A stretch of 64,000 nt of DNA from Thalia democratica (lineage: Eukaryota): assembly GCA_965202585.1 (NCBI GenBank), contig OZ241826.1, positions 62,248,001 to 62,312,000 of the forward strand, written 5' to 3'. Below, in pieces: positions 1 to 64,000 of the stretch. Each line of letters opens with the position of its first letter. Position 1 is the first letter of the stretch. A program made the position numbers and the translations under genes. The notes beneath the pieces were generated by a model. The model had not been told where the DNA came from, searched no databases, and worked only from the letters and a program-made list of their open reading frames with translations.

Positions 1-377
1 AATGATTAAGGGCATAGGAAGGGTAAATCACTTTGCTCTTGATTTTATTTTGTTGAGTTTTAACTAAGCTACAATTTGCTTTTTACAAATTAAAAAAAAA
101 ACAAAAAAATTTTTGAGATATAGTAGGAGAGTATAAGAGGTGTTTTATGAAAGGAGAAAATAAAAATGACAAATAACTAGAAATTACTAAAAATATATGT
201 ACTACTGTGTTTTTGAGTTTATGTCAAAAATAAAAAGTGAAAAATTAAAATCAAATGAGTAACTTGTGCTTATATGTTTCATTTGACATAATAAAAACTA
301 TGTTTCTTTAAATTATTATAAGTTATTATATACTTAAATTCTAAAATTTAAAAAAAAAATTTACAGTGTATACAAAC

Positions 378-823
378 CGACAATCAATTCCAATTGGAAC
401 AAATACAACATGATTTGAATTAGAAGGAATGAGTGATTGAATTCTTCCAAGTCGAATTAAGCTGTTTTTAATTATAATAACTTATTAGTTCAGTAGTCCA
501 GCATTAGTATATAGTATGAGTTTTAAGAATGGTATATAGAAAACAATATAAAATTTAAAACTGAATATATAGAGTAATTTACTAAAAAATAATATAAACA
601 TTACTCCAAAAAAATAGTATTAGTAAATTTGTTACTACATAGCCTAAATCTAGTTAAAATAAAATTTTATTTACAATTACAAATTTTATATTGCAATCAT
701 AAGACTCATTTAAGATGGCAAAACTAATTTAAGTATAGCTTGAATAAACAAATAATCTTACCTTTCAGATTTAGAAAATCCTGAAGTAGATAGAAAGTTT
801 TCTAAATCAAGTTTATCAAACAT
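378..823 (-). CDS. First two coding exons (823-762 and 461-378) of a gene running off the left edge; weak resemblance to the DNAAF9/C20orf194 N-terminus
   Basis: ATG at 823 preceded by an in-frame TAA; donor GAAAG|gtaaga; acceptor aaacag|C; phases match (AG|C). Product MFDKLDLENFLSTSGFSKSESLIRLGRIQSLIPSNSNHVVFVPIGIDCR resembles my recollection of human DNAAF9 SCSRLRQVQSIL...LGIDSRY. Exon 2 could instead end at 365 (ACT|gtaaat). Confidence 0.5.
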
Positions 824-1565
824 TTTCGATTAATACAGTCCAAATATTTTTTTAATCCTTAATTTTGTTGTGAAAAATTGAAACAATTGTTTAAGAAAAA
901 ATTAAAATGTAAATATATAAGTTTTTCATAAAAAGTTAAAATATATTATTGCTTTATAGTATAGCAGAAAAACAGATTAAGTAAAATTTATGTTTCTTTT
1001 TCAAAAACAATATCTTGGATTATACGTTTTAGAAAAAGAAGAAAATATGTGCATGATCGCAACTAAGGTCAATGGACTGGTGTGGAGAAAGACCTTTCGG
1101 TTATTGAGCTGTGCACCATTTGCTTGTAACCAATACTTTGAGCTAACTTTAAAACAATAATGAAAAAACATAAATAAATAGTTAAAAACTAAAAAAACAA
1201 TTGTATATAAACTAAAAAAGAAACTATTAAAGTTTAAAAATAACCTTTTTTAACCCAATACTGCCAATATTGACCATAAAAATCATAGTCTACCATGGGC
1301 TCCACACCATCTTCTCCCCTAGATTTCTATTTTCATGATCATTAACATTCAAATTTTGCTTGTTGCCCTTTCTACAAGAGCAACAACAAAATATACAACA
1401 AATAACATAAAACTAAATAAGAGGGGAGAATTGGTAATGTCACTACAAATAAAATATTTAGTATAATCATTATATTGTTAGAGCAACATGTATTTTAAAT
1501 AGTGTCTATAAATTTCAGTATATGTGATTGTAGGTAGGTAGAAATTTAAAAATATCAAGTATTTG

Positions 1566-2290
1566 CTAAAGGGTATAGGGGTAATTTATTCCAATATATT
1601 TTAACTTGTCTAATAAAATTTTTTTACCCACACAGTCAAAGACCTTGCTCAGATCTAATAAAACAGCACAAACTGCATTTCTCTTATTAAAGAAGGACAA
1701 TGTACTTTCCACAAACTCTGACAGAGCTAAGGTAGTAGAGTGTACCTCAATGAATCCAAACTGAGAAGAATTCAATATATTGAAATTAGTTTGTAAAAAC
1801 AATTATACATGACTTTTTTTATAATTTGTAAATATATGACAAAAGTGAAATTAATTGATAGTTTCCTGGAAGTGTTTTTGAACTTTCTTTAAATATAGGT
1901 ACAACTTAAGCTAATTTTAAACAATTTGGGTAATTACCTTCCTGAAATGCTTGTTTAGTTTGTTTTATTATAACTTGAGCTATATGATAGTTTATTTTCT
2001 TTAAGATTCCAATAGAAATATTACTACACCACAAGCTTTATCTGAACTTAAACTTTGTATGATACTAATTATTACATTTTCAAGTACATCAAACCAGGCA
2101 GAACTTTTATAGTAATTTTTTAGGCCATTTATAGAAGAGTTAAGATAAAATTCCTTTTTTGAATAAGTTTGTTTTCCAATATTGGCAAAATGTAGGTTTA
2201 AGTTATTTACAATTTCATCTGGATAAACAAAAGATTTTTCATATATTTCAAGTTTATGGTGAAAAAAATATGTTTTTTTCTGTCTGTTGT
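1566..2290 (-). mobile_element. Degenerate CR1/L2-clade LINE reverse-transcriptase fragment
   Basis: Minus-strand translation gives EIVNNLNLHFANIG, EGNYPNCLKLA*VVPIFK...PGNYQLISLL and QFGF...HSTTLAL...VLLDLSKVFDCV...ILLDKLKYIGI, which are typical CR1/L2 RT motifs, interrupted by stops and frameshifts. Confidence 0.85.
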
Positions 2291-3033
2291 TAACATAAGT
2301 AACTACCTTCCAAATCTCTGCTGAATTTTTATTACTCCTTTAAAGTTTTTTTTCAAAATACATTTTTTTGAAATTTTTTTAATTTTTGTAAATTTGTTTC
2401 TGTAAACTTTATATTCTTTTATTTGGTTTTTATTACTAAAGTTATTTATGCAAAGCATTTTGTAAAGGTTGTATTTATGTCATAGTCTAAAATGGTACTT
2501 TGTTTTAAACAAGCTATAAAAACTTATTTATTACAAAATCTTTCATAAAATAATTAAACTTTAATAATTAATCACTTTCATTTGTAAATATAAAGTTATT
2601 ATATCCCTGTTTATAATAAAGTCTTTTTTCTACAGCTGTATACATTTAATTTAAATTATTTGTTAATAAAGTTGCACAATGACCTAAAGATTTTTTTCAC
2701 TTCTATGGTCCATTGACCATACATTCAGTTTTTTTAAATTAAAAAGTGGAACTTTCTTACTGGCTATTTTAAAGGTTGTTTTAGCTTGTAACCTAGCAAA
2801 TTTCAAAATTCAAGTTTTAGGTAGAGTATTTATTGAGAAGCTTACTTTCATGTACGTTAAAAACTTCTTAAAATTACATATTAAGAAGCTTTTTGATTTA
2901 AGCTATTTCTTAAATCATATAAATAATAAAGAAAAAATATTTAAGAAATATTTTTTTTTAATAAGTTTAATAACAAATAAATAAGATTGAGGAGATTAAC
3001 ATTTTTGTCTGTCGAAACAATTGTCGTCAATAA

Positions 3034-4452
3034 AACAGATATCTCTCTTTATTAGGCGTAGTCCATGAAATACATGATGTTGAGACGATAATTAAGATAT
3101 TTGAAAACTTTTGTAGGTACAACCGTATCGACGAACTTGACAACTGCGAAAGAATAAAATTTATCTTATGGTCCAATGTTTTACCTCTTGATGAAATGTT
3201 TATTTTTTTTGATTCAAACACAACTGAACATAGAAATCTCGCTAATTTAAAGTTATTCCTACGTAATTTTTTTACGAGAAATAGTGAGAAACTTAAGCAA
3301 GAATTCCGCAAATTAGAAGCCGAATTTGCCGAACTAAAACGCAGAGCAGAGGCTAGCCAATCTTCGCAAGAATTACGAAAATTAGCAACCAAATTACGCG
3401 AATTAACAACCAAATTAGTCGAACACAATCGCAGGAAAGCTGCTTTAGAATCAAAATTATGCCTAATCATTAAAGCTGCCATACCGAATTATGACGTCAC
3501 AAGTACAGTATCACGCAATGCAACGATAATATCTACTAAGAACCAACGTTCTGAGCAACCACGGCCAGAATCGCCAAGGCCAGAGTCATCGACCAGAGCC
3601 AAAGATCAAAGCCATGCCAAACAGCACCACAACGGGCAGTCCCAACGGTCAGCGCAATCGCAGCAAGAATCCACAGGGCCCGAGTCAACGGTCAGCGCCA
3701 CCGAAACCAGTACCTATGCTACAGCGCCAACGATCAGAGCCATCTCAGCCAGCACCAAAACGGGCAGTCCTAACGGTCAGCACAACCGCAACCAGCACCA
3801 GAACGACTAGAGCCAATGGCCGCTTCAGATATGCCTTCCGTCAAACCGAAAAACGCAAGGAAATTATCCTCGTCGACGACAGAAAGCACAGCAGCGACTA
3901 CAAACACTTCTTCCAACATTAGTTCGGCTGACAGAATCACGAAAGTTGTCCCTTTCTCTAAACAAGAGCACATCAGCGATGCCAAACAACGACGAAACTA
4001 AAAATGTTAGGCCCGATCGCGAAATCTTAACAAAAAAGAACATTTCTTACTCTAAACGCAAAACGATTGCGAATAACAAAAAACCTTTAGAAATTAGCTT
4101 ACAGCAAATTTTTAAAACAAACCACGAATTAGTTTGGTTTATATTTCACAAATGGCGTTTTAAAGCCAAAATATCTTATAAAAATATTGAAGCACGCATT
4201 TTTAAAAATAATCGCGAATTATTTTAGTTCATTTTCCATCGATGGCGCTTTAAAAATTTTAATATCGAAAGTTCTTTAAACACTATCGCACGTATTTTTA
4301 AAACTAATCGAGAATTATTTTGGTTCATTTTTTACCGATGGCGTTTTAAACATATTAAAATTGAAATACTTGTCAGAAACCGTTGCAAAACTTTGAGTTT
4401 TTGTTCAGACGCTATTTTTCACCGCTGGAAAATTAAACTAAGATATTATTGA
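3034..4452 (+). pseudogene. Gag-like ORF with coiled coil, Q/S/N-rich linker and C-terminal FxxW repeats; two in-frame TAG stops (3808, 4225)
   Basis: Frame 1 is open from 3034 (after a TAA) to TGA at 4450-4452 apart from two TAGs. The second TAG occupies a position that is TGG (Trp) in the neighbouring repeat copies. The N-terminal segment aligns by eye with the Gag-like core of the 61686-63377 ORF. Confidence 0.6.
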
Positions 4453-5673
4453 AACTTTACTGTTTATTAACTCTTACAGCAAAACGTTAAGACCACCAAA
4501 AAAGTAATGAACTTTTAAACGCAAAGTTAAGGCCACCAAAAGAGTAATTTATTTTATTTAATTATGGTAGGCAACTAGTCTAAGAAGCTTTCTGAACAAA
4601 GCTTAGGACGAAATCGAGTCATAAGAAATTGAAGGAGTATTTTTAAAATTTATTCTTTAACTTAAAATTTTATTTTGAGCTCTTACTAATATAAAAAATT
4701 GCCTTAATTTGTTAAGCTTTATTTCAATTTGTTTTTTAATAACAATTTTATGTTCAAACTTGAACTATAAATCTACAGTTGTACTATAGTAAACTTAGTG
4801 ATTGATGTTAAAAAGGTTTATTACCTTGTTTTTTGTTGTTATACACTTCAGCTTACTTATAAACACACAATTTTTATAAGGTCATTTGAGCTATTAAAAA
4901 TCTTATTCAACATTTAAACGCTAACAACAACTTTGTTTTTAACTTTTCTAGAATATTAAAGTTTTAAAAGTTGTACAAAGTTCAAAGCTATATATTTTTT
5001 ACGAAAACAAGTCTAAACTTTTGAAATGCTTGTAACTGCTTTTTTTGTCAACTAACTTATGTTGAATGTGAAATGTTTTTAATATACTAAAAGTTTATAT
5101 AACGAATAATTAGCTTAAACTGAAGCTATAAATTTTTTTTAAGTTTCTTATAAACATACTTAAAAGTACTTGAAAATACTTGAAATAGTATTTTCTTTAT
5201 GTGTTTGCTTAAACTTTTTTTTAACTTCGCACGAAAACGGCTCGAGAAATCGAAAGTCGTCAACAAGTCGGCGAAGGTGACAAAGAGATCTGATCCACCA
5301 TCAGCAAAGCGACCTAGTGGAGTACAGATGAGGAGACCGAGAATGCACGAATAGCGTCTACGGGAAACAACGACTCACGAGCACTACTGGCGAATAAAAT
5401 TCTAAAAATTCTTTCATTTTTTTTCATTTTTGTAGATTGTTAAATTTTTTTAATTCTGCGCGTCATTTATTAAACTCAAAGCATTTACAAAGAAAAATAA
5501 TAGTTTTTTACAAATAACAAGATATAAGTCGACGATAGTCGACGGTCATATTACATTTATGCTTCTATATTAGAAGTTTTTTTAATGTTTTTTACAAATT
5601 CAAAAATAATTAAAGACCATATTTTCTTAGAGATAAGTGTGAACTCCAAAATAGCGGGTTTAAGTCGAGAGAA

Positions 5674-6158
5674 TGTAACAGCATGCGCTGTTCTTTCTTC
5701 CTTTTTTCTCAAAAAATTCTTAAGTTGAGTAAAACGCGAGTTTCTGGGCAGTCTAGTTTTACCTTTGTACTTATAGTATATTGTTTCAAAAGATTGTGTT
5801 CGCCTCGTACTTCTTGTACGAAGGCGACTGTTTTTTATATAAACTTGTGAATTGCAGTAGCTTATTTGTATATTTGTTATCGTGTTATCGCAGTGTATAT
5901 TCATTTTAATACTGTTTGTGTTTCTAGACTCGATTTCTTTATATACAATTACTTAAGCATTCTAACAATCTAACTATTTAATTAAACTAAGCTTAAAACA
6001 TAGTCTAAGTTTAGTTCGCAATTCATTAAGTCGACTTAGCTAAATAACTTAGCTAAGTCATATCTAAATATTTAAGATTTAAATAACATCACCGATAATA
6101 TTTATAACGCGCACGGAGTCAGATAATAACCAGCATTGCGTAAATATAAGTATTAACA
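5674..6158 (+). repeat. Candidate 3' LTR of element A
   Basis: Begins TGTAACA after a purine tract, ends TATTAACA, ~485 bp, contains TATATAAA. No second copy in the window to confirm the boundaries. Confidence 0.4.
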
Positions 6159-7506
6159 TCATTCGGTCGATTGTTAAAATCACAACTCTAAATTTTAAAG
6201 TCAAAAATACTTTTATTTAAGGTTTAAACTAAACTAATTACTAATTTAAAAGTATATTTCAGTAGTGACTTCATAAAAAGTGCGGAGCAACGATCTAAAT
6301 TTTTATTGTTACCTTTTGCTAAATGCAGTTTATTTTAAAAATTCGAAATAACTAAAATGAAGCATTTTATTTAATTAGTGAGATAGTGACTTCAGGTAAT
6401 TTATGTTGTTTCACAACGCTTATGACGTCATCATGCATCCAACTAGTATTTTTTGTTTTTACTGAAAAAAAAAATTTTTTGAAATTACGACGAGCAGATT
6501 CTAAGAATTTCTTTATTTATAAGCTATAGTTTACAAATTTATTAGTTCACGAATTTGTTCATAGTTTTTTTTTACTCAGTCGGTCTTTAACATTAATGAA
6601 ATACTCAGTTACAACTAAATTCATATTCTATTTGAATAAGAATTTAATTTTAACTGAGGAACTCATTAATCTCATTGATTAATTGAGTAAAATATTGTTT
6701 TATGAAAAAGTTCGTGAATGTATAATTTTGTATTTATATTCTTGGATTAAAACTAAGAATTTTGATTGTTACTCTTGAAATAAGCGAATAGTATTACCTA
6801 TAGTTTTTTTTTAAACATTTATTTTTTTTGAATTAATGCATGAGTTTTTACTTTGATTTAGACAAAAAGTACTTTACTTGATCAAACTTTAAAAAAACTT
6901 TCCATGCTAAAAATATATGCCTAATTGAACTTTGTTTACAGAATAATATATCTGATATTAGAAGTTATAGGTCGTATTTCTGTCGACGGGTTGTAAGTAA
7001 ATTACAGGAGGTAAAAGTGTTAGAGACTAGTCAGAAAGTTAGTTATAGATATTTAAATGTAAACAAATCCCAATTAAAAAACAACATTTTTAAAAACAGT
7101 TTTTAGATATGTCTATGAATTTAAGGAACAACGAAAATGATAACTTTACAAGCAATTAAATCAAAAACTAATCAAACTATTTCAAGAAAATAGTAAATTT
7201 ACTTATAAAAATATAAGTACAAATTAAGTAAGTTCTTTTGTTATTGAGATACTAATGTAACAAACTAAAAAAAGATAGCTATGGGGTTATGCAGTATACC
7301 AAAATCAACTTTAAACAAGCAAACTTAAACATCTAAATCAGTGTTTCCAAATTAAAAACAGTACTAAAACTTACTAAGTTTATCGGTCTTTAGATTTTAC
7401 ACAACAGCTTTTCGAGATACTTTACTACCTGTTATTGAAGCTTTTTTTTTTAATAAGTCGTTTAAAGTTATACTTAACTTATCTCTGTGCTAGGTATGTT
7501 TGTACA

Positions 7507-7625
7507 TGTCCTGGACAAGACGTTAATAGGTATCCGTGGTGTACGACTTCGATAACCGAAAGTTTCTTCGTTCACCAGGTCCTAGGACAAAATGTCTTAA
7601 GCGTCTTTTTTTGCTGTTCAATAAA
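7507..7625 (+). repeat. Short interspersed repeat, copy 1 (second copy at 33187-33305)
   Basis: TGTCCTGGAYAAGACGTTAA...CGATAACCGAAAG...CACCAGGWCCTAGGACA...AATAAA is shared with 33187-33305. Confidence 0.75.
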
Positions 7626-10600
7626 CTATATGTAGACTATATAATAAATAAAAAATAGCTTTTGAGTTTTTATTAAACTAATACTACTACATAGATTTTA
7701 TATACAAATATTAATTTTTAAAACCCACAATAAACTGAATGTAACAACCATCAAAGCTACATATTTTGTTTTAATAAAAGTGAGCATTTTTTAATTATCA
7801 TAATTTTTTATATTAAGAAATTAAAAACATCTAAAACATATTAAAAACACACAAACTTAATTTAGATCTGCTTATTAAAAGCATTTTTAATCTTTAACTA
7901 GTTTGTATAAATATAATGCAATTGCAGATCTTGTAAAGCTGTTATTTATAGTCTCTTTTTTTTTCTTTTTTTTTTTTGAAAAAGTTTAAAGTTTACTTAA
8001 AAAAATTAAAAAGTATCCTTTTTTTCAGCACTTGGTCTCATATGTATTAATCAGAAAAAATTATAAGAATTTAGATCATTTAAAGATAAATTAAGTAAGA
8101 TGAGAACAAAAATGTTATAAAGCACAACAAAAACAAAATCTAAAAAGTAATTTTTGATAGAGTAAAAAAAATTAAAATAATTAATAATTAAATTGCAGTG
8201 AAAATTTAACTAAAACTAAATACTAAGTCTCTTTTCTCAACAAAAAATTTTAAGTAGAAGAAATCTAATCAAAAATAACTGCAACTGTAAAAGAAAAAAG
8301 TTAACGATGACTCCATACATTAACAACTAACGGTGTATTTCTATAGTCAATTATTGATTAAAGTAGAGAAATGGCAATGTTTCTTTTCGCCGGAAAATAT
8401 TTAGCTTTTTATTTTTTTTGCGGACCGGAACTGTTAGAAAAATACCTTAACGGGATAAATGTACAGGCCGCAAACAGTAAAAGAAATCGTACTATAAAAA
8501 TAAAGCTGCATTGAAATAATCATTCAATAAGCATTACTTTTTATTAAAAAGCAAATTAAGAACCCTTTTTAAAATAATTATTATAAAAGAGCTAAATTTA
8601 GTTTTGGCACAAATTTTTTTCAAAACAAAAATAGCATCGAAGGCCAGAGACTTCATTTAGCGGACCGTACATTTCCCAATTACTGCAACTTTCAACGAGT
8701 AAACCTCAAAGTTCATAAGTAAACCTCAAAGTTCAGAAAAAGTTCAAGGATAACTTTATCTAAGTATCTTACTAACAATAAAGACGAGCAAGTAGAAAAT
8801 AAGTATTGTAGTTTACATCTTGAGTTCGAACTTTTTAAGTTTGCACGCACTTCCCATTGAATTCACACTTTTTACCAGTAAAACGTGGCAACTTTTAATT
8901 TAAATAGTAATTAATAAAACAAATTTATGTTTAAGGTTTGTTATGTTAACTTAAATAAAAAGAAAAAATTCAAAATTCCTAATTATAAAACAATAAAACT
9001 AAAAAAATAAACAATAGTTTAGTTTACATCTAAAAATTTAATGACGAAAAATAAATAAAAAGCTGTTAAATACCCTTAATAAAACTTAAAGATTAAAAAC
9101 GAGCAGAGTAAGTTACATAAGCATCATTATAGTTGAAATATCGATATAAAAAATTGTCAATGTTTAAAATCAAGTTTTTAAACAAAAACAACAAAAAGTG
9201 AAACTTACGAATAATTACTTCATAGTATCAACTTAATACTAAAAAAGTATGTCAGCAAAAAAATATTTATAAGTAGTTTAATAATTCAACTATTATTGCT
9301 TTATTATATCTAATAACTCAACAATAATAATGTTTTTGATGGGTATTTATTTTATGTTTTTAGTGGTTTTTACTTCTTCATAACATTATTGGCTTTTAAC
9401 ACATAGAAACTAACCAATCAAAAAACAAATCATCATTTCTTGGGCCCTTTTCGTTGAGTTCGCACGCTTGGATTTTCTTCAAAGAGCAAACTGTAGAGGA
9501 ATATTAATGTAGTCAAAATTTAATGAGAGCATTTTAGTTGCAGAACCCAAATAAGAAAACTAATCTAAGTCTACGAAATGAACAAAAGCTTATTTGTCCA
9601 AAGTGTTTTTTTATAATAAACAGTCGGTTTATACTTACACATTTGGCATTGTTTATAATTTAGACAAGTTGATTTATAACATAATACATTTCATTTAGAT
9701 TTGTTTGGTAAATTTCCAAAAAAATGATATTGAATTAGTTTTGACTTATAAATTTGCTATATGCTCTCTTTTCGTTATAAAGTGACTAAAAACTAATAAT
9801 GATTTTTATGTTTAGTTCTATGTTAAAGGAATAAGCTACTAAAAACTTTAACACTTGTTTTTTGTTACTTTTTTTTAAATAATTAGCTTAAATTCTCAAA
9901 TTTTGCTAATATCAAGTTGTTAAAACTGGGTATGGTAAAATAATAAGTTTCATTTTAGCACGCTTAGTTACTACAACTTTTTTTAACTAAAACTAACAAA
10001 CTTTATTTATTGTTAATTTTTAGTTTAATGATTCAAACTTATCTTAATCTAATTAATTATCCAATATTTTACAAAAATAAATAGTTCATGTATCTAATAA
10101 AGTTTGTTATTATAAAAACTATTTGCAATAAATGTTTAGCTTTAAAAAATCATTAGCTGGTATTTCACTTAATTTACTGATTTCTTCATTAAGTTAAAAG
10201 TATGTCAAAGATTTCATAAATTATAAAACAATTATGGGATTAAAATTACAACTTATATGAACCAACATGTAGGAAAGTTAAGTTAAAAAAATATTTTATA
10301 GCTTTATATCAACGATGTTAAAACTACTGTTTGTTAGCATTATTACGTCACAAAGATTGTGTTTGTTATTGGCGTTACTGAAAAATCAGAAAATTTAAGT
10401 TGTCATTTAAGCCGTGATTTTTTTATTTTTTGAAGATTACTTACATAAGTTGATTTGTATTTAAGTCATTTGAAGTGTTTAGACAACTTTGTTATTCAGA
10501 ATAGATTAATATTTTAGATAAATAACAATGAATTCAAAAGTATATAAACATTTTGCAGTAAATATTCGGAAGGTTTTTTTAATTGTCTAAGTATACATCA

Positions 10601-12163: not shown

Positions 12164-12664
12164 GGAGAACGAGTCAATTATGCACGAAGTGTCACTTTTG
12201 CATGAAGACACTTTTGCACAAAGGGTCAGTTTTGCACGAGTGATAATTTTTCACGAGAGTTAAAAAAATTTAAATGATAAAAAAATAAAATAAGTAAACC
12301 AAAATAAATTAATTAAAAAATTACCGACCAAGGGTAAGGGGTTGCAAGTATTATAAAACAAAATTTAGAAATAATAAGAAAAACAAGTAACCGATCAAGG
12401 GTAAGCGTTGAGGGTAACAGTGATAGTTATAAAATAAATAAATAAACAAATAAATAAATGATACTAAAAAAAATTTAGAAATGCTGATCAAGGGCAAGGG
12501 TTAGGGGTAATAGTGTTAGTAAAAAAGAAAATAGTTAGTGTTTATAATAAAATAAAATAACAAGTTTTAACCCGTCCAAAATTGTTTTCGTGCAAAAGTG
12601 ACTCTTCGTACAAAAGTGTCATTTCGTGCAAAAGTGTCCCTTCGTACATTTTGACACTTACCCC
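12164..12664. mobile_element. MITE with long imperfect TIRs (TTTTGCACGA subterminal repeats); same family as 26294-26772
   Basis: Left end has repeated TTTTGCACRA, right end the reverse complement TCGTGCAAAA; internal CCAAGGGTAAGGGTT repeats; flanked by TTTTAA on both sides. Partial ends of the same family occur near 11650-11760, 13895-13975 and 51660-51715. Confidence 0.75.
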
Positions 12665-15059: not shown

Positions 15060-18000
15060 ATGAAAGACACGATTGAAATGCAAGAGAAGGCTAGCAGCAA
15101 GAAGAAAGATGGAACAAAAGCACTTGGTCAGAGTATTGTGGGTCAGTTCACTCCGGTCATCACTGCTGTAGCACATGATTCGGACATGACTCAGACTAAC
15201 AAAGAAACAATGGACAGGAAGTTTACTGCATCTGAGCTCGCTAACCTTACGCTTCACCAGGTTAGAACTAATTTAAAGGACAAAATTCAGGTAGAACTAA
15301 GGAAATTTATACATACTAGCGAAGAATTTTTAGCTAATAATTTTTAAAAATACTCTAATTTTTTATTATGTTTTATGTAGTTACCAAATAACAAACTAAA
15401 TGAGTAATTAATCTAACAACCAAAGATTTTTTCTAGTTTCTAAAGTGTTATAGTTCAGGAATTTTTATGAATTATAAACAAACTGGAGTTACCTAGTTAG
15501 AGCTAAAAAATTAAATCTAAAGTTTCTTAATACAAATAGCAGATTAAAATCAAATAAAATAGAACATTTAATAAAAAGATAAAATATTAAAATTCAAACT
15601 ATGATTTAGTAGGGGTATATACTTTTTAGCTATCGCGTAATCCTTGAGGCCTGAGTTAAGGGATTACTTTTAGTAGAATTAAATACAGAGCTAAAGCTCC
15701 TCTTAGTCTTATTGTTATTTTTTATCAGTGAACGCTTAGAGCGTTTGTTGTTTGGGGCAAGATCTACATTTTCCTACTCAATGGTTATAAAAATATTCAA
15801 GAAAGTAAATATTAAATACAAAAAATAAATATTAATATTCTAATTTTATTATGGTATGTTTATATAGGTGAGAAATCATAAAAACCAGTTTTACAGTTAC
15901 ACTTAGTTTAATCTTCGTAAGTTAAATTAATAAAACCAATTAAAAAACAACAATTTATAAAAAAGAAGTATACTTAACAGATACATGTTGGCACTAAATA
16001 AAATGTTAGTTTAAAAACAACTTAATAAAATAAACATCAACCGCCAACACACGAAAATGGCCGAAAACTAAAATTAGAATTTAATAAAAAATGGGCGGAT
16101 TTCTCACAACCGAACAATGAGTCGAACTTTCTTTTTTTTATATAAGTTTTTTATAAAAAAGACTAAACCTATAATTTTGGTTTAAAGTTAAACATTTACA
16201 ATTTTTAAAATTACCTAGCTTTTTTTATTTACACAGAGGTACGAGACACGAGATTTATTTTATTATAATTTATTGAAACACAGTTTTTTACCCAAAAAGG
16301 ATTGTTAAAATATAAATAGTTCATGACTTTTATATAAAAAAAAATTATAAAAACTTATTAATAAACAGTATTTTCAAAAAAAAAAACGGTATAAGTCTAA
16401 CAGAGCTTAAGCCTAAATCTTCGTATGCCGTGAGATAAGCTCAAGTTAACATATAGGTTTTATCATACCACTTCGGTTGCGACTGACTGTTCAATAAGAA
16501 CACAACTCGAGTTTCAGTCTACTTAAAGCTTGTAGTCTGATGACCAAACGTTTATTTAATGTAAGTGGTAATATTTTAAGATAATTTACTAAGCGATACC
16601 GTTCCTTAAATTGATGCTTAGATGAAAATTTGAGCTTAAAGAGACGTTATGTTTGTTAAAAGCTATAAAAGAGTTCATAAATACACGCAGTTATTTTTTC
16701 AGACTTTAATAAACAATAAGAGTTAGAAACTAAATATTTTTTTAAATAACAAAGATGTAAAAAAATTAAAACAAACATATAATAGTAATCATCAAGAGAA
16801 CGGTTCAAGTAAACAACAGTTACAAGTAAAAAAGTTGTTTTAATAATCTTTTTTGTATAAAATTTTTATTTATTGGTGTTACGTACTTAAAAAAAAAAAA
16901 TTTTTTTTAATGTTATGCTACTTAAAAAGACTTTGTTAAAATTGTACCTAATTTTTGTTCCCTGACATAAACAGAACATTTAGATAATCTATTTCTCGGA
17001 CTAAACACAATGAAACTTAAAACACGTATATATTTACGCAATTTTAATTATCAAAATTTTATTTACGTATATCAAATTTACTTTGTTTTATTTAATACTT
17101 TAATTTGAAAGTTTTCATATATTCAGAAATTTGTAAAACTTTTTACCTCAACTAAAAAATGTTACTATGCAAAAATTTTATAATCAAATAGTATTAAATT
17201 TTAAATAACTAATTAAAAAAAGAAATTTATGAAGAAAGAGTTTTATATAAAATACTTATTTTGCAAACAACAAAGTTATAATAAAAAATAAAACTTCAAA
17301 TGGTAGTTTTTTTTCTTTTCTAAATTAACTTTAAAATTATTTGCATAACTAATTCTTTGAAAACTATTGCTATTTTCGTACTAGTAAGTTTATAAAAAAC
17401 GTATAACCTACAAAGGTAACAATAATGTATGAAATTAATTTTATTTATAAAGTTATAATTTATGCACATAAGAATAGTTTCTTTTCTATATTTTTACAAA
17501 AGTGTTTGAAACTATTATAAGAGCTTTTAACTGTATTATGTATTCAAAAGTTATAAAATAGTCATGGAAATTTTTAAACAAAGTGCAATTTTCAAATATA
17601 ATGCTTTAGTTATAATATAAGTAAAAGCTAATTATCTAAATACATTTTAACTTAAACCAATCAATTCAAAATTAGCAAAACAAACATAATTTATTTACAT
17701 TTAGTAAAATACTAAAAAACACCAACTTTGTGATAAACAAATCTAAAAATCTTAAACGTTACTAAATACAATATGAGCCTATTAGTTAAACAATAAAAAA
17801 CAGTTCAATTTGATTTTTTAATAATTTAAAACACATTTTAAAAAAATTATAAAACGTTAAGTGTATCAAGTTTGAATAATATTTCAAAAAACTATATACA
17901 ATTTTTCTTTGAATAACTTCATTACTTATAGTTTACTTTTGAAATATAATCAAACAAGTTACTAAATACTGGCCGAGCTTCAAGACTAGTTGCAATTAAA

Positions 18001-55280: not shown

Positions 55281-55836
55281 TGTCGCTAACCGAGGCTTCT
55301 ACTTATACACTTTAGGGGCCTGTTTTATAACGAAACGTGCGCTCTAACTTGTATAATAGAAGTCCCCAAGATAACGCTTATATTATAGTTGACTTAAATC
55401 AACTAATATGAATTACTTACTATTTACTAAAGGTTTAATAAATCAGTTACTTATACTAATTTAAACTGAGTTCGAATCTGTGATCATGATTATATTTACA
55501 ATGAATTTGCGAAACGAAAAGATGATAAAATACTGCACAACATTACACTAATAAACCAAATTATCAATTTCTTTTGAAAGACGACAATCTCGAATAAAAG
55601 AAACTAAACACTAAATGTTTAAACCAAACTCAAAAAGTATTCTAAAATCGAAATCAATTCGACAACAAGATTGAAACCATTAAAACTTAAGTGCAGCGAA
55701 AAGCTGCACTGAGTTCAGACCGCTGCAAGGCAGTAGAAACTAAAAGAACTCTAAATTACTCGAGATTGTTGAATTTATACTCGCTTGAGAAAAAAGAAGA
55801 AAGTAAAAAAGAGATAATTACTGCGTAAGCGGTACA
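55281..55836 (-). repeat. 3' LTR of element B
   Basis: Direct repeat of 57818-58503; adjacent PPT GGTGAGAGGAGAAAA (plus 55837-55851). Confidence 0.9.
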
Positions 55837-56137
55837 TTTTCTCCTCTCACCTTCGTACTTTAAGAATTTATTCTTGGTTTTCCGAAAAAAAACATTAATT
55901 TTTATTCATTAACACTTGTAAGAATGCTTAAAACTTCCTATATAGAAAAATTAACGAAAAACGACCGCCGACTTTTATCTCCTTAGTTTAAAAAGCATTA
56001 ATTTAAAATACACAAAATTAATAAAAGTATGATAGTGTTTTCAAATTGACAGACAAATGTAGAAAGTTTAAAAAATTTCTTCGCCGCTGGAACTCGCTCC
56101 CTTGTACATCTCCACGTCGTTTGACCGGTTCATGCTG

Positions 56138-56320
56138 ATCCGTCTCCTCGCCTCACCTAACGGTCTGTTGGCGCTACGGATTCCGTCTCCTCGCCTCACC
56201 TTAGCGGTCTGTTGGCGCTACGGAATCCGTCTCCTTGCCTCACCTAAACGGTCTGTTGGCGCTACGGAATCCGTCTCCTTGCCTCACCCAGCGGTCTGTT
56301 GGCGCTACGGATTCCTCTGA
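56138..56320. repeat. Tandem array, four ~43-44-bp GC-rich units
   Basis: Unit ATCCGTCTCCTYGCCTCACCTAACGGTCTGTTGGCGCTACGG with small indels, followed by a partial fifth copy. Confidence 0.9.
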
Positions 56321-57802
56321 TCCGTCTCTCTGTACATCCCCTCGTTCCTCTCCTTGTACATAAAACTCGGTCTCTTCGTACCGCTCCTCGCCGATTCGTT
56401 TCTCGAGCCGTTCGTGCGAAAGTGCAATTAGAATGTACGTCACTACTTGATATCAATTTTAAAAACAAGTTAAAACATTAAAAAAATTTAATTTACAAAC
56501 TTATATGCCATTAGTTAGCAACAACATTACATTAGTCAATTAGTCTATTTATATTTTAACTTTAAAGATTGTTAAGTTTTAAAGCAATTAAGAAACATTT
56601 TTGGCTCCAATCAATACACAGTAATTCTCTACAAGCCTTAAAATAAAAAACATTTCACATTTTACACGAATAAGTTGACAAAACAAGCGTTCACATGCGT
56701 CTCAAAAGTTTAAACTTCTTTTCGTAAAAATATAGGCAGTGAACTTGTACTGATTTTGAAAACTTTAATATTCTAACAAATTTTAAACAAAATTGTTTTT
56801 TATTTTCAGATTTTAAATACCGGGTAAGACATTTAATAGCTCGAATGACCTCGTTAAAAATGATTTTTTGTAAGTACGGTTAGATTTAAAACAACAAAAA
56901 ACATGCCAATAAAGTTTGTTACAAGCAATTAACAAGGTCACTGTAAAACAACTGTAAATATTGTAATTTAAAATTTGAACATAACATTGTTGCTAAATAT
57001 AAAATTAAACTAAGCTTAATAAATTTAAGACATTTCACTTTAATAACCGATTATGCACTCGAAAACAAGTTTTAATAACCTCATACAAGTATTTTTACCA
57101 GGAAGAACGAAAAAACAACAATGTTTTTACATGCAGTTTAATAAGTTTACTATCCGTTATAGTTCAAATTAAAACAATTGTCTGAAAACAAAACAATTAA
57201 ACTTTACAGTTGCTAACTTTTATAGACGTTTAAAACTCTTTATGTTATACGAAAGTTTTATTATTAGAAGGCTTTAATTTCATTTAATTTTTAGCGAGCA
57301 TTTCTCTTTTAACAAAATGTTTAAAACGATTAAACTATATTTAATTAATTTGACGAGACGGCGGAACAACTTAAAAACAAGACTAACTTTTGTTTCAACT
57401 TGCTCGTACAAGTTTTACAATTCACTTTAAAAAACGCTTCAACGATGAATTGCGATAAAATCATACACTACAAATACATTTTAGTTCTAACACATGTCGG
57501 TTAGCCTTTCCCAAACCACTTTAACATAAAATTAAACACAATAAAACTAATTACCATTAGAAAAAACAACTCAAATCTATCACAAACTCGAACAACTTAG
57601 TTGTTTTTCCAACTAGAAATTTTAAACTCATTTTTATAAACTTTACAGACCTGATGACTAGGTTAAATAAACGCCATAAAGTTTATCAAATTTATACTAT
57701 TATTAAATCAAGTTTATTCCACTCTGTCCCCATGTCACCATCTAAAAAACGTAGAAATTTTAATGAAGGTATCTGTGTTCAATTCCAGCTATAACTAACT
57801 GG

Positions 57803-57817
57803 ACGTCCGGGTCATCA
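57803..57817 (-). promoter_or_regulatory. Primer-binding site of element B, tRNA-Trp-like
   Basis: TGATGACCCGGACGT immediately after the 5' LTR; close to the classic tRNA-Trp PBS TGGTGACCC(C/G)GACGT as I recall it. Confidence 0.7.
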
Positions 57818-58503
57818 TGTCGCTAACCGGGGCTTCTACTTATACACTTTAGGGGCCTGTTTTATAACGAAACGTGCGCTCTAACTTGTATAATAGAAGT
57901 CCACAATATAACGCTTATATTATAGTTGACTAAAATAAACTAATATGAATTACTTACTATTTACTAAAGGTTTAATAAATCAGTTACTTATACTAATTTA
58001 AACTGAGTTCGAATCTGTGATCATGATTATATTTACAATGAATTTGCGAAACGAAAAGATGATAAAATACTGCACAACATTACACTAATAAACCAAATTA
58101 TCAATTCTTTTAAAAGACGACAATCTCGAATAAAAGAAACTTAACACTAAACGTTTAAACCAAACTCAAAAAGTATTCTAAAATCGAAATCAATTCGACA
58201 ACAAGATTGAAACCATTAAAACTTAAGTGCAGCGAAAAACTGCACTGAGTTCAGACCGCTGCAATGCAGTAGAAACTAAAAGAACTCTAAATTACTCGAG
58301 ACCAGAGTTGGTAAAATGCTAATAATTACTATGGTAATTCAGCAATGAAGCGTATAAACTTTGGTTTGTTTTAAGTTAGTAATTTCACGCTCGAGTAAAC
58401 AAAGCAGAGCTTTTTAACATGTCTGCTCGAGACTGTTGAATTTATACTCGCTTGAGAAAAAAGAAGGAAGTAAAAAAGAGACAATTACCGCGTAAGCGGT
58501 ACA
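57818..58503 (-). repeat. 5' LTR of element B (contains a 123-bp MITE)
   Basis: Direct repeat of 55281-55836 with an insertion at 58303-58425. Confidence 0.9.
58303..58425. mobile_element. Tiny hAT-type MITE nested in the 5' LTR of element B
   Basis: Absent from the sister LTR; 8-bp TSD CTCGAGAC at 58295-58302 and 58426-58433; imperfect TIRs CAGAGTTGGTAAAA / TTTTAACATGTCTG. Confidence 0.85.
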
Positions 58504-58900
58504 CTTTAAAATTTATTTTTCTTTTCTATATCTTAGAACTCTATAGATACTATTCATTAAACTTTCTAAAAATTAAATATGCTTTACTCGCTACCCACTA
58601 GCGTTTGGTTAAGTTTGTAATTTTAATTTTGTTAAAATTAATAATTTACTACTGCATTTACATTTAGATCAATTAAGCTTAATAAATTGTTTTCTTTTTT
58701 CAAAATTCTTGAGATAAATGTATTTTCAGTTAACTACAGCTATTTTAGCTTATAGTGTAAATACAAGAGTTTATTTTGTTGATAAAAAACCATAATCGTT
58801 CAGCTATGGAAAAGAAGCAACGCTTAAAATGAAAAATAAAAATTATGTCTAAAGAGCAAGCGAAAAGATATATAACATCCGAGTTTTTTGGCATTATAGC

Positions 58901-59442
58901 TTTAACCAAATCGGTTATCTTAATGATTTTTTATGTTTATGTCTTAACTACGTGGCCTCCAGTAACTTACTAACTGACAGCTTTAGCTACAAGTAGGTAC
59001 AATTATAAGTTACAAAACTGTTTTCTAAGTTATGAATAAAACACACTTTGAATAAATGCAATTTACTTTATTTTCAATAATAGTTCTTAGTTCAGAAGAA
59101 AGAAACTATTAAATCACGATACAAATAAAATCTATAAAAAGTATCAACAATCGTAAAGTTATATAAATACTAACATCAACTCCGCGATGTAGACGTTTTC
59201 TTTATTCTCGAAACTTGAATTAAACGTTGAACTTAATCGTAACTTGATCGTACCGCGGAATAACTAAGCAACTAACGCGTATTTGAAAGACAAACGCAAA
59301 TATATACGCATTGAAATGAAATTAACTCCTTGAAATAATAAAAATGTTTGTTTTTAATACAGGAAGCACGTCACGAAATCTGCGTAAAACAGTTTACAAC
59401 ATCTGCTTTAAAATACGAAAATGAGATGTTAATATTACTACA
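58901..59442 (-). repeat. 3' LTR of element C
   Basis: 542-bp direct repeat of 63451-63993; minus strand reads TGTAG...GGTTAAA. Confidence 0.92.
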
Positions 59443-60382
59443 TTATTTCTTTTTTAATTATAAATTTAGTGTTTAAAGCCTGGTTTTAAATAATTTAAAT
59501 CCTTAAAATCCTACTTAACTTTAAACTTTTTTTAAGTGTTAAAAGCGCGGGTGAAAAAAAGTAAGAAAAAGAAACTGTATTTCTTATTATCTCAAAAGTT
59601 ACATAATTTACAAAAACTTAGATAAAACGCAACATAAAGACAAAGTAAGTAACAATGATAGTCATTTAGTTGTCCTCAGGCTTCTTATCCTTGGGGTTCT
59701 TGTCCTTGTGCCTGTTGTCCTCGGGCATCTTCTATTCCGGCATTTCTCTTCCGATTTCTTCTTCTACGGTGGTTTATTTAGCAGGAACGAATTGCTTTAA
59801 TTCGCTTGTTCTTCTCTAAACTTCAAATTCAAAAATTCATCGAAGTCACTTGTTGACATAGAAAAAATTCATCTTTTCATTCTCCAGCATTGTAGTATTA
59901 ATTCATTATACAAAAATAAGCAGCTAAAAAAAAACTTTTGAGATATTCTTCCAAGAAAGTTCAGTAAAAGCTATTATGTTACTTTGCCAAAAGACAATAA
60001 CGAAACTGTCAGTATTTACTTTTAAACCCACAATTTTATACAAAACAAAAAAAAATTAAGCATTTAAAGATGCATTGAATAAAGAATTAATAGTTTAAAA
60101 CACATGAAACATTTCAATTTTATTTTTAACGTAAAAAAAAAACATATTTTCTTAATATTTAACTCGCAGACTTTAATAAACAAAATAGATAACGTTTTCT
60201 TTAAGATATTTTACAAAACAATTAGCAGTATTTTCATGCAAAAACTTTTATAGGATTCAAATACAAAGTACTTTTTTTTAAAGCGACACAAAACTTATGC
60301 ATTATAGAAATTTATTTAGAGAAAAATTTGGTGAGTGCTTTTTTTCGATCGTTAACAGTCAAAACTAAATGGGAGTTGAAAG

Positions 60383-61065
60383 CAGTGGCGTCGCGTGGTA
60401 TTTTTCTTAGGTGGTGCAGAAAAAAAAAATCCGAGTTAAAGGTGATCGGTTTGCCTCTGCTCGACTTGCTTCTTCTCGAGTTGCCTCTTCTCGAGTTGCT
60501 TCTTCTCGAGTTGCTTCTTCTCGAGTTGCCTATTCTCTAGTTGCTTCTTCTCGAGTTGCTTCTTCTCGAGTTGCTTCTTCTCGAGTTGCCTCTTCTCGAG
60601 TGGCTTCTTCTCGAGTTGCTTCTTCTCGAGTTGCTTCTTCTCGAGTTGCCTCTTCTCGAGTGGCTTCTTCTCAAGTTGCTTCTTCTCGAGTTGCCTCTGC
60701 TTGAAATTCTTTTGCTCGAGTTGCCTTTGCTTGAATTGCCTGTGCTCTGCTTAGCTTTGTTTTCGTTTTTTGTTTACAATCGCTTGCGGAATGATACTTA
60801 AGCATGTACTGTTACAGGTAAATTTTCAACTTAGCTTATTTACCGCAAGATATTGATTTTGCGGTAATTCTTGAATAAATGATACTGTTTTGAGTTCATT
60901 TGCGGCAGTCAGCTAAGAGTTTGCGGCAGTGAAGTGAGCAAAATGGTCGTTTTATAAGCGATTTTGTTTTAAAAATAACGAAAACATTATAGATACTTAA
61001 TTTTTTCTAACAAAATTTTAAGGTGGTGCAGTTGCGGCAGTGCAACACCCCACGCGACGCCCCTG
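60383..61065. mobile_element. Non-autonomous hAT element nested inside element C
   Basis: TIRs CAGTGGCGTCGCGTGG / CCACGCGACGCCCCTG; exact 8-bp TSD GTTGAAAG at 60375-60382 and 61066-61073. Confidence 0.9.
60452..60738. repeat. 15-bp minisatellite (GTTGCTTCTTCTCGA)n inside the nested hAT element
   Basis: About 17 units including degenerate ends; explains the RVASS and LELLL ORFs in the ORF track. Confidence 0.95.
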
Positions 61066-61685
61066 GTTGAAAGTACTTTAAAATTCAAAATTTATAGGAA
61101 AAATTTATCACGAGTCGAATTTGAAAGCTTTAAACTTGTACTTGATTATTTTACGAGCAAAAAAATGTAGAAATTTAATTTTGTTTTAAAATTAGAGTAA
61201 AATGTAGTTACTTAAATTTTAATATAAAAATAGGCTTATTAAACTTTTTTATTGTTTAATTGTTATGTCTTAGATTTTAAATAATATTTCAGTTACCAAA
61301 CTGTAATTTATAATATAAAAAACTTTATAACACATCATTAAAAGTAAAAAAGCTATAAACTATACAACTCAGAAATTTTATTAGAATAGAATACAAAATA
61401 AATACGCTTAAAAGTTTCTTTCATTTTAACTTCTTAAAAAGTTACCTGAGCTTAAAAAATATTTAAACAGATTTTCATGTTAATAAAAAGTTGCAATTTT
61501 TTACCTTTATTAAAGTCTGTTTTGTTAATTTTGTAACAGTATTTATATTTTATCTTCAAAGGGCTTTATGATAAATGTTAAAACTTTTAGACCTGCTATT
61601 AGTAATTCTGACTCATTTTTATTCTGTGTTATAATTTCTTTTTTGTCAAAGGAATTAAGTACTGTCAAATTGTTTTTCTCTTTAG

Positions 61686-63377
61686 CTAATATGTTGCTTG
61701 ATACACTAGTTTCTGATTTTGTTTTTGAAGAATTGTAATAGCCTGAGTCTTGTTTATAACGTTTAAGCTACAATGTTGGCACTTTATTTTTTGGTTCGCT
61801 ATCATGTTTTTTATTGTAACTGCTATTTTTCTGCTGTTGGTTTTGATGTTTTTCTTTGCTAAGTTTACCTTGTTTTGCTGTAAAAGCAAAAGCTTGCTTA
61901 TAAGCTCTATTAGCTTTTTTTTCTGCTGTTGGAGGTCACTAGAATGATGGTTTGCGTCAAATATTTTTTGTTTAAAATTTTGGTTGTAGTTTAAATTCTT
62001 ATCTACAGCATACTTAGACCCTTGAACTGCTCTACCATTAGGACCTGTCACATTTGCGACTTCTGGCATGTTGTTTTTACCTACGACAATATCAAACTTG
62101 ACTTTCTCTCTTTGCGCAAGAGACCTTAAGAATTTGTTCGGGTTGTTTTTTATGATAGCTGTATAATGAACAAAAATATCGCTGTTCTGATCATCACGAT
62201 GAATAAAACCGTAACCTTTGCGAACATTAAACCATACTACTTGACCAGTTACTCCAATTGCTATAGTATTTTTGGTTATCTGAGCTCTTTCTTTGACTGT
62301 TTGTGACGCCTTATTTATATTATATGTTTTTGTGGGTAAGTATTGATGACATGACAAACACTGTGCTATGTTTACATTATTACTACTATTCCCATTGTAT
62401 GATTTTCTTGGTTTAAATTTATCTCTATTTTGATTATGTTGACCATAATTGTAATTATGATTAATACCATTATCTCTTAAATTAAAATTTTGTTGATGAT
62501 TAGTACGAACTTGCTTGTGGTAATTTATTTTAGACTTATAATGATTTTGCTCATACTGCTGTAGTCTATCGTAACTAACTTGCTTAGGTATTAATTCGTT
62601 TTCTTTATAAGCATTCCATATGGCTTGTCCTTTTCTTTTAAAAACTTCTAAGCTTTCATCAAAATGTTCCCTAATCTTATCTTTGATCGAAAAGGGCATA
62701 AAGTATGCAAGAAAAAACTTAATTCTGTTCTGATCTGGACATTTGGCCAAACTCACGGCTGTAGCAAATATTTTATTAAAGTTTGTACAATCATTCCAAA
62801 TTGGGATTTTATCTAAAATCTCAGCTAACTGATTGTCCCTATTGATAAAAAAGTTTTTTAAAGAACTGTAATTTCTTACACCTCGTTCTGTCATTTTATA
62901 ATAGTCTGACAACTCTTCTCTCGGCCAAAACCCAGTTAAAATTTTATACTTTTCTGTATTACTAGAAATATTTTCATTTAACATTTCCTCCTCGAAAAAA
63001 CTAATAATATCACGAGGGTTTCTTACAAAGTCTAACCTTTTAAACTTTTTACTCAGTCTTTGCGCCTTTAATGTGTCGCTAAAATTGTTAAAATTATTTT
63101 GATTACTATTTTTGTAATCATCGTAAAAAGGTTCGCGTTTTTCTAGCATCGCACGTTCGTAATGTAGTGATCTAGACTGCTTTAATCTATTATTTAACTT
63201 TTTTATTTGCTTTTTCAAAATTCTTAACTCTTCTTCATTTGTTAGCTTCTTAACTTCGCTTAATTTTCTAAATTGTTGTTGAATGCTGTTTGACGGATAA
63301 AATTCAGCATTATCATTCATCATTTCTGCTTGATGAGAATTATTAAGATTGATATCGTCATTGTTGTTTGTGTGCAT
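61686..63377 (-). CDS. 563-aa Gag-like protein fused to a Y-box (YB-1-type) cold-shock domain
   Basis: Intact single-exon ORF starting ~55 nt after the PBS. Parts: N-terminal coiled coil; Gag/capsid-like helical core (~63023-62600); N/Q/Y-rich linker; CSD at ~62255-61998, [86 protein letters not shown], essentially colinear with YB-1; C-terminal coiled coil. Confidence 0.9.
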
Positions 63378-63449: not shown

Positions 63450-63450
63450 C

Positions 63451-63993
63451 TTTAACCTAATCGGTTATCTTAATGATTTTTTATGTTTATGTCTTAACTA
63501 CGTGGTCTTCAGTAACTTACTAACTAACAGCTTTAGTTACAAGTAGCTACAATTATAAGTTACAAAACTGTTTTCTAAGTTATGAATAAAACACACTTTG
63601 AATAAATGCAATTTACTTTATTTTCAATAATAGTTCTTAGTTCAGAAGAAAGAAACTATTAAATCACGATACAAATAAAATCTATAAAAAGTATCAACAA
63701 TCGTAAAGTTATATAAATACTAACATCAACTCCGCGATGTAGACGTTTTCTTTATTCTCGAAACTTGAATTAAACGTTGAACTTAATCGTAACTTGATCG
63801 TACCGCGGAATAACTAAGCAACTAACGCGTATTTGAAAGACAAACGCAAATATATACGCATTGAAATGAAATTAACTCCTTGAAATAATAAAAATGTTTG
63901 TTTTTAATACTGGAAAGCATGTCACGAAATCTGCGTAAAACAGTTTACAACATCCGCTTTAAAATACGAAAATGAGATGTTAATATCATTACA
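63451..63993 (-). repeat. 5' LTR of element C
   Basis: 543-bp direct repeat of 58901-59442, followed on the minus strand by the PBS and the ORF. Confidence 0.92.
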
Positions 63994-64000
63994 TAGCATT

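Follow-up and report, generated by a model that had tools for sequence, protein, structure and literature searches.

The nucleocapsid end of the retroelement Gag protein is usually seen as a fixed zinc knuckle or basic tail. Here we describe, in a stretch of 64,000 nucleotides from Thalia democratica (GCA_965202585.1, contig OZ241826.1, positions 62,248,001 to 62,312,000 of the forward strand; hereafter the window), a long terminal repeat (LTR) retrotransposon, element C, in which a Gag-like core is joined to a cold-shock domain (CSD). A more decayed repeat, A, which carries a core resembling part of that of C, and an LTR element without open reading frames (ORFs), B, lie in the same window. 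Among described retrotransposons, those closest to C by their Gag belong to the CsRn1 clade (CsRn1, PwRn1 and AgCR), the hallmarks of which are a CX2HX9CX3C motif in Gag (CHCC), a 4-bp target-site duplication and a tRNA-Trp primer-binding site (PBS), TGGTGA(G/C)CCCG(T/A) (PMC2582038). C resembles this clade in its helix-rich Gag, the relatives of which exhibit CX2HX9CX3-5C, and in its 4-bp target-site duplication, which is GCTA in C and CTTT in B. The neighbouring B contains an approximate tRNA-Trp-type PBS, and a DT/SG protease after Gag is seen in one relative of C, P0159. In contrast to the clade, C is devoid of pol, so its placement rests on Gag and not on reverse transcriptase or integrase; its Gag has a CSD instead of the CHCC knuckle, and its PBS-like sequence shows no clear tRNA-Trp fit.

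Several other described systems share single features with C. As an LTR-bounded element with a gag ORF only, without pol and presumably mobilised in trans, C resembles the terminal-repeat retrotransposons with a GAG domain (TR-GAG; named in PMC8704663 and PMC13570524), but these have been described in plants. The core of C is two-lobed and all-helical like the capsids of Arc, dArc1, PNMA and Ty3, which are its best structural matches. However, it has no detectable sequence similarity to them, and Arc and PNMA are domesticated single-copy genes, whereas C is a mobile element. To our knowledge, the Gag of TR-GAG keeps the usual architecture, with no captured host RNA-binding domain. A Gag-derived capsid followed by a Y-box-type CSD within one protein is found in vertebrate PNMA-like proteins (P0054, P0057 and P0060), which differ from C in belonging to the Pfam PNMA Gag family, in having CSDs that do not group with those of the elements and, for P0057 and P0060, in being annotated as ordinary genes. 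A working analogy is provided by the ORF1p of LINE-1 type (LINE, long interspersed nuclear element), an RNA-packaging and chaperone protein with an N-terminal coiled coil and an RNA-binding domain. C likewise exhibits a coiled coil and then a cellular-type domain that binds single-stranded nucleic acids, whereas ORF1p has no capsid lobes, belongs to non-LTR elements and shows no homology to C.

Element C is a genuine LTR-bounded element that is gag-only and lacks pol (Table 1). Self-comparison revealed direct repeats at 58900-59443 and 63450-63994, which are 98% identical and in one orientation. On the minus strand, the LTRs start with TGTA and end with TTAAA, and the GCTA found outside both of them constitutes a 4-bp target-site duplication. 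Immediately inside the 5' LTR, a G is followed by the PBS-like TGGAAACCACGCAGTG, with TGG one base past the LTR, and a purine run, AAAAAAGAAATAA, adjoins the 3' LTR at 59443-59455. Neither a signal of pol nor any ORF longer than 97 aa was found in the ~2.1-kb non-coding interior, which is also too small for pol, and the gag-CSD frame is the sole long ORF between the LTRs. The window as a whole, in which long ORFs are scarce, has no other of such length. By comparison with its relatives P0001, P0254 and P0002, a homopolymer run at approximately 61914-61917 is the site of a frame change, beyond which the C-terminal tail of the protein continues in a different frame; this tail contains a stop at 61768-61770, and the stop usual in the family lies at 61543-61545.

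Table 1. Coordinates of the features of elements C, A and B in the window (strand as far as assigned).
Feature	Position	Strand	Remarks
C 5' LTR	63451..63993	-	543 nt, starts TGTA; GCTA directly outside at 63994-63997
C 3' LTR	58901..59442	-	98% identical to the 5' LTR; GCTA at 58897-58900
C non-coding interior	59443..61542	-	~2.1 kb; 18 tandem copies of a 15-bp unit at 60451-60724
C ORF in its present state	61686..63377	-	563 aa: short coiled coil, two-lobed capsid-like core (aa ~95-270), N/Q-rich linker, CSD (aa 377-445)
C-terminal tail of C, displaced	61543..61917	-	other frame; 86% identical to residues 486-609 of P0001 (~123 residues)
A core, N-lobe-like	3034..3300	+	frame residues 7-78 can be aligned to the C-family capsid lobe 1
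A coding remnant	3034..4452	+	72% identical to P0226 (intact) over its residues 193-655
A coiled coil	~3270-3480	+
A S/T/P/Q-rich low-complexity stretch	~3480-3950	+
A FxxW ('FIFHRWRFK') repeats	4138..4452	+	96-bp tandem unit, 1.8 copies at 4192-4366 (TRF)
Non-coding tail downstream of A	4697..5580	+	collinear with the inverted interior of element B
Element B	55281..58503	-	ORF-less LTR element, similar to large retrotransposon derivatives (LARD) or terminal-repeat retrotransposons in miniature (TRIM)
B LTRs	55281-55836 and 57818-58503		TGT...ACA ends, ~98% identical; the second with a ~125-nt insertion
B target duplication CTTT	55277-55280 and 58504-58507
B tandem array	56138-56315		44-bp unit

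With regard to the core of C, both its predicted structure and its relatives point to a Gag capsid. The AlphaFold model of residues 95-275, obtained with 11 aligned sequences, exhibits nine helices and a predicted local distance difference test score (pLDDT) of 74.9. When this model was compared with the PDB by Foldseek, the top three matches were rat Arc, human Arc and the nuclear magnetic resonance structure of the Arc capsid domain, with probabilities of 0.99, 0.98 and 0.93 over 143-147 columns, and further matches comprised the C-lobe of Arc, the C-terminal domain of the Ty1 capsid (CA-CTD, in the p22 restriction factor), the capsid (CA) of murine leukemia virus and dArc1. A fold search of BFVD also returned Gag proteins, albeit weakly: five were in the top 25 with E-values of about 1, and several retroviral Gag proteins were in the top 15 with E-values of 0.7-1.6. 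These models support a Gag/capsid-like core with a predicted two-lobed, all-helical fold.

The relatives of the A and C proteins, designated here by P numbers, come from ENA, Logan, JGI or MERC assemblies, all of them unannotated short contigs; the MERC run accession carried by one relative is presumably that of a marine metatranscriptome. A profile of the C family, which was checked to contain no CSD columns, retrieved 117 representative clusters among 1.84 billion proteins. In many of the longer matches, Gag terminates in CX2HX9CX3-5C. Nine members (P0017, P0072, P0073, P0080, P0105, P0159, P0174, P0178 and P0182) exhibit CX2HX9CX3-5C, whereas the CHCC signature CX2HX9CX3C is absent from the C protein of the window. 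In P0159 (E 6e-6), the core at residues 13-197 is followed by CX2HX9CX3C at 201 and then by LLVDTGAGVSIIP...ILGIDFL, a DTG retropepsin, for which the Pfam family gag-asp_proteas gave a sub-threshold match (E 0.004). A word search with the Gag region of P0159 matched P0159 alone. The presence of CHCC and the link to a protease within the family are stronger evidence for the Gag identity of the core than its fold.

The C-terminal part of the C protein contains a CSD (Pfam PF00313, E 6e-19), the nearest solved relatives of which are the CSDs of vertebrate YB-1 and YB-2 (1e-30). Judging from its sequence, this CSD is of the cellular Y-box type. Nine element CSDs group in one clade, with a support of 96 in the Shimodaira-Hasegawa-like approximate likelihood ratio test (SH-aLRT), and this clade is nested (98) among the CSDs of cellular proteins without gag. 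A single, nested clade suggests that the domain was captured once from a host gene of the Y-box type. Two of the cellular proteins near the element CSDs, P0019 and P0021, combine an AKAP7-type 2',5' RNA ligase-like domain (PF10469) with the CSD, which is unusual for a Y-box-like protein. The PNMA-like capsid with a Y-box CSD seen in P0054, P0057 and P0060, the latter two from the frog Pseudophryne corroboree, is an independent fusion of a capsid with a CSD, since the CSDs of these proteins lie outside the element clade. A literature search combining capsid or Gag with the cold-shock domain yielded no relevant report.

Within the Gag family, the core is followed by several different C-terminal arrangements. 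Some members exhibit the CHCC motif only, P0159 has CHCC and a protease, and P0017 has CHCC and a CSD. A CSD alone is found in C, P0001, P0002, P0010, P0013, P0016 and P0020/P0236, two KH domains in P0079 (E 1e-17), and a Cys/His-rich module without a Pfam match in P0011, P0231 and P0233; this module was not called a CCCH finger, as zf-CCCH was not detected in it. The remaining arrangement, in P0005-P0008, P0070-P0073, P0078, P0082, P0085 and P0107, comprises no extra domain and ends in Q(G/K)N-x2-P-x3-Q followed by the stop, which could be a site of gag-pol frameshift or read-through. On the tree of the cores, members with a CSD alternate with those that have CHCC or no extra domain, such that at least seven gains or losses of the CSD are needed, and they repeatedly pair with closely related Gag forms that have CHCC or the QGN end. 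A single clade of CSD-bearing cores was rejected by the approximately unbiased (AU) test (p 1.5e-6), at a cost of 477 log-likelihood units. From this we infer that the CSD moved among Gag lineages by recombination, an explanation favoured over many losses.

With regard to A, the reading frame opens at 3034 directly after a stop and without a start codon. Its intact relative P0226 is a single ORF of 655 aa, in which ~190 N-terminal residues precede the core; this is followed by a coiled coil, a stretch rich in S, T, P and Q, and finally three to four FxxW repeats. The first ~190 residues of P0226 are absent from the copy in the window, which is interrupted by stops at 3808-3810 and 4225-4227 and by frame changes at approximately 3720 and 3940. 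The FxxW repeats are consequently in frame with the core only in P0226, being separated from it in the window by these stops and frame changes. That these repeats are a mere non-coding satellite was considered and rejected: the frame is open through them in P0226, P0065 and P0227 and is interrupted by a single stop in the copy of the window. Pfam gives no match to the repeats, which show no sign of host origin. Where the C family exhibits the second capsid lobe, A exhibits its coiled coil after the core. A is a truncated pseudogene, namely a 5'-truncated and frame-shifted copy of a separate repeat family represented by P0226. In P0065 and P0227, which are of the A type, the first ~350 residues are replaced by an unrelated N-terminus of 75 residues joining at 'IKNQRSEQ', which indicates that the A family is itself mosaic.

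No pol was found in A within the window, and self-comparison with blastn revealed no direct repeats of at least 60 nt involving positions 1-9000 other than internal low complexity, so A has no flanking LTRs in the window. Downstream of A, positions 4697-5083 match 57035-56643 at 74% identity, and two further short blocks of the non-coding tail also match the interior of B; this collinearity is a circumstantial hint that A-type repeats are the interiors of LTR elements. Directly to the left of A lies a decayed non-LTR (LINE-like) reverse-transcriptase remnant (1566-2458, minus strand), a 78-aa piece of which (1566-1802) matches RVT_1 at E 3e-4, below the cut-off. This remnant may mark the place where A was truncated. 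An ORF of 151 aa runs antisense to the core and coiled coil of A (3027-3482, minus strand) and is probably a by-product of repetitive coiled-coil codons. A was also considered as part of a spliced host gene, in which a possible splice acceptor at 3036-3038 would begin an exon, but no upstream exon was found within the window.

The likeness between the cores of A and C becomes apparent only when families are compared. A direct BLASTP comparison of the two window sequences gave coiled-coil noise, and the pairing of the cores reached an E-value of 0.83. When A was aligned by hhalign with an alignment of 14 C-family members, residues 15-78 of A were paired with residues 120-179 of C (E 0.053), which is the register originally proposed. 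The same register was recovered when the A family was aligned with 22 C-family members of 15-35% identity (P 2.2e-4, probability 45%). Since a larger whole-length hidden Markov model (HMM) lowered the score of A, owing to N-rich tails, we used models restricted to the core. The core-only HMM of C assigned 13.5 bits to A of the window and 19.9 bits to the intact relative P0062, and none of 3000 shuffled sequences reached either score. Reciprocally, 18 of 28 diverse C-family cores were recognised by the A-core HMM at an empirical p < 0.05, five of them at p < 0.001. The ~65-residue stretch common to A and C is therefore probably similar beyond chance, reflecting distant homology. This putative homology cannot be seen by comparing just the two window sequences and emerges at the family level. 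The core of A is probably related, distantly, to no more than the first capsid lobe, A being a decayed offshoot or a mosaic and not a second working Gag.

These results bear on the original prediction, which was made from the window sequence and described A and C as two LTR elements that share a Gag-like core, lack pol and carry different modules that look host-derived. The two peptides quoted in it are both present, that of A in frame +1 at 3088-3267 and that of C on the minus strand at 63008-62841, within the C ORF. The absence of pol from A and C holds within the window, and the shared core holds at the level of families, in the register proposed. As LTR elements, as capsid-like proteins and as carriers of a host-derived module, the two differ: the LTRs with their duplication, the capsid-like fold, the CHCC-bearing relatives and the Y-box CSD nested among cellular ones are all on the side of C, whereas A has no flanking repeats in the window, resembles the first lobe only and ends in repeats without a Pfam match. 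The combination of core, coiled coil, low-complexity linker and terminal module is found in C, and for the A type only in the intact P0226. The proposed lineage of gag-only elements that swap accessory domains is borne out by the C family, the members of which exhibit several C-terminal modules and not a single common one, but A does not provide an example of it. The prediction was thus partly right: the finding is of greater interest on the side of C than first stated, and A is not a second clear example.

Based on these observations, we consider it likely that C is a recently inserted, non-autonomous Ty3/gypsy LTR element with a Gag closest to that of the CsRn1 clade, in which a CSD replaces the CHCC motif, and that A is a decayed, distant copy. 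Nevertheless, a number of results weigh against this interpretation. No Gag family of Pfam reached the threshold in C, in A, in P0226 or in 40-odd relatives, and neither A nor C matched DUF7041, Retrotrans_gag or PNMA even at an E-value of 10. Membership of DUF7041, to which the original prediction pointed, is thus not supported for either protein; a single sub-threshold DUF7041 match among 22 relatives, in P0137 (E 0.032; 15 bits, the cut-off being 28; on the same lobe), indicates that the suggestion went in the right direction. Sequence searches of the PDB with two profiles returned CSD or coiled-coil matches and none for the core. The Foldseek E-values of the C core are 0.04-0.14 for the top Arc hits, none reaching 0.001, and its whole-domain template modeling (TM) scores are only 0.36-0.43. 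For the core of A, the fold model is of low confidence (pLDDT 47-74) and matches only helical hairpins, such as those of seryl-tRNA synthetase (SerRS) and ING4, and no capsid. Residue shuffles destroy local sequence structure, and the significance of the A-C similarity is possibly overstated. P0159 and P0079 each come from one short contig that may be an assembly chimera, and the CSD group submitted to the AU test was defined after inspection of the tree. The PBS-like region of C, TGGAAACCACGC, fits the published tRNA-Trp PBS of the CsRn1 clade poorly, and it matches what we take to be the tRNA-Trp sequence at 11 of 16 positions. Scans of contigs (two of metagenomes, one of viruses and one of genomes) gave no match to an autonomous, pol-bearing partner or to DNA of the relatives. 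Finally, the copy of C is young, yet its tail is already damaged.

Other explanations have been weighed for A and for C. The likeness of the two cores could be devoid of homology if two helical segments rich in N, K, I and F, in an AT-rich genome, had come to share motif positions by chance or convergence, A then being an unrelated family of repeated genes or pseudogenes. This would agree with the poor BLASTP pairing, with hhalign probabilities of merely 1-45%, with a fold model that places strands in A where C has helices and does not recover a capsid, with the absence of a second lobe, a knuckle and LTRs from A, and with the absence of A-type proteins from the 117 clusters of the CSD-free search. 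We nevertheless regard it as unlikely, given that A-type cores score 13-20 bits against HMMs in a range that none of the shuffles reaches, that 18 of the 28 C-family cores exceed the 95th percentile of shuffles in the reciprocal comparison, and that the significance of the hhalign pairing rose from 0.017 to 2e-4 with a more diverse C profile. Moreover, a coiled coil, K-x-L/F-x-x-L and F-E-x-x-C occur in a common order in both families, and a tblastn search with the KH variant P0079 independently lands on the core of A, although weakly (E 0.17). For C, a domesticated host capsid-CSD gene, immobile and lying between two solo repeats, would be reminiscent of the frog capsid-CSD fusions annotated as ordinary genes (P0057 and P0060, PNMA and CSD), and the core and CSD of the window copy are indeed open. 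However, the two repeats are 98% identical, have the same orientation and the same four flanking bases, and are accompanied by TGG inside one and a purine tract inside the other; the ORF has a frameshift and a stop in its tail, and the family comprises more than 100 clusters at 50% identity, with many fragments. Domestication is, in our opinion, scarcely credible.

If C is the mobile element proposed above, its Gag-CSD protein would assemble via the capsid lobes, while the CSD, as its anatomy and general knowledge of Gag nucleocapsids suggest, would bind or chaperone the element RNA. Protease, reverse transcriptase and integrase would come in trans from an autonomous relative. The nucleic-acid-binding end of Gag would be an exchangeable cassette that can consist of CHCC, CHCC with CSD, CSD, KH or the Cys/His-rich module, and the exchange would most likely occur via recombination between co-packaged element RNAs. 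In its broadest form, this proposal is of a CsRn1-like Gag family, in a probably marine animal lineage, with a swappable nucleic-acid-binding end, over many lineages of which a host CSD, captured once, was spread by recombination beside KH and Cys/His variants, with gag-only elements packaging RNA by means of a cellular fold in place of a zinc knuckle and borrowing pol from autonomous partners; we advance it tentatively, at a little below an even chance. Gag-CSD could otherwise be a parasite or inhibitor of its autonomous relative, co-assembling with the partner Gag and poisoning the particles in the manner of gag-derived restriction factors. The Ty1 p22 restriction factor, a fragment comprising the Gag CA-CTD, is among the fold matches of the C core, and the pairing of CSD forms with close CHCC or QGN-end forms is what would be expected of an interferer that needs to be compatible with its target. 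Such a role appears quite improbable for a gene whose element is bounded by intact LTRs of 98% identity and by a target-site duplication, and that has therefore itself transposed recently; many diverged multi-copy clusters are, in addition, typical of a proliferating element. The roles of helper and inhibitor are not mutually exclusive.

The surroundings of these elements look like a repeat-rich eukaryotic stretch, animal-like in character. The window is very AT-rich, with a GC content of 21-32% per 2 kb, and contains no runs of N. On its minus strand, element B exhibits a strong purine tract, GAAGGTGAGAGGAGAAAA, and a PBS-like sequence, TGATGACCCGGA, which agrees with the published tRNA-Trp PBS of the CsRn1 clade at 10 of 12 positions. 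The tRNA scan of the 64-kb window was empty and thus provided no host tRNA for comparison with the PBS of C and B, and the Rfam scan of the window gave no match. Five foldback palindromes of 180-280 nt, resembling miniature inverted-repeat transposable elements (MITE) and matching their own reverse complements at 74-82%, are located at 22113-22291, 25220-25486, 27663-27881, 39002-39192 and 50280-50448, and some of the palindromic stretches are related to one another (25389-25545, 49229-49313 and 50210-50452). Other dispersed repeat families, of 69-80% identity, are found at 12201-12662 and 26312-26772, and at 7507-7631, 21214-21314 and 33187-33311; neither group is related to A, B or C. Short ORFs at 43111-43368 and 15060-15347, one of them with a stretch resembling a membrane helix, are possible host exons for which Pfam is blank.

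If the proposed exchange of Gag ends is correct, the family would constitute a natural experiment in which a retroelement capsid works with different cellular RNA-binding folds, CSD and KH. This would bear on the evolution of packaging specificity and on the means by which non-autonomous elements stay in step with their helpers. It would also bear on the origin of fusions between capsids and RNA-binding domains, of which the frog and fish proteins represent an independent capsid-CSD case. With the caution that the relatives are unannotated short contigs and that the mechanism is our reading of them, the family may also serve as a natural design set for capsid-based RNA carriers.

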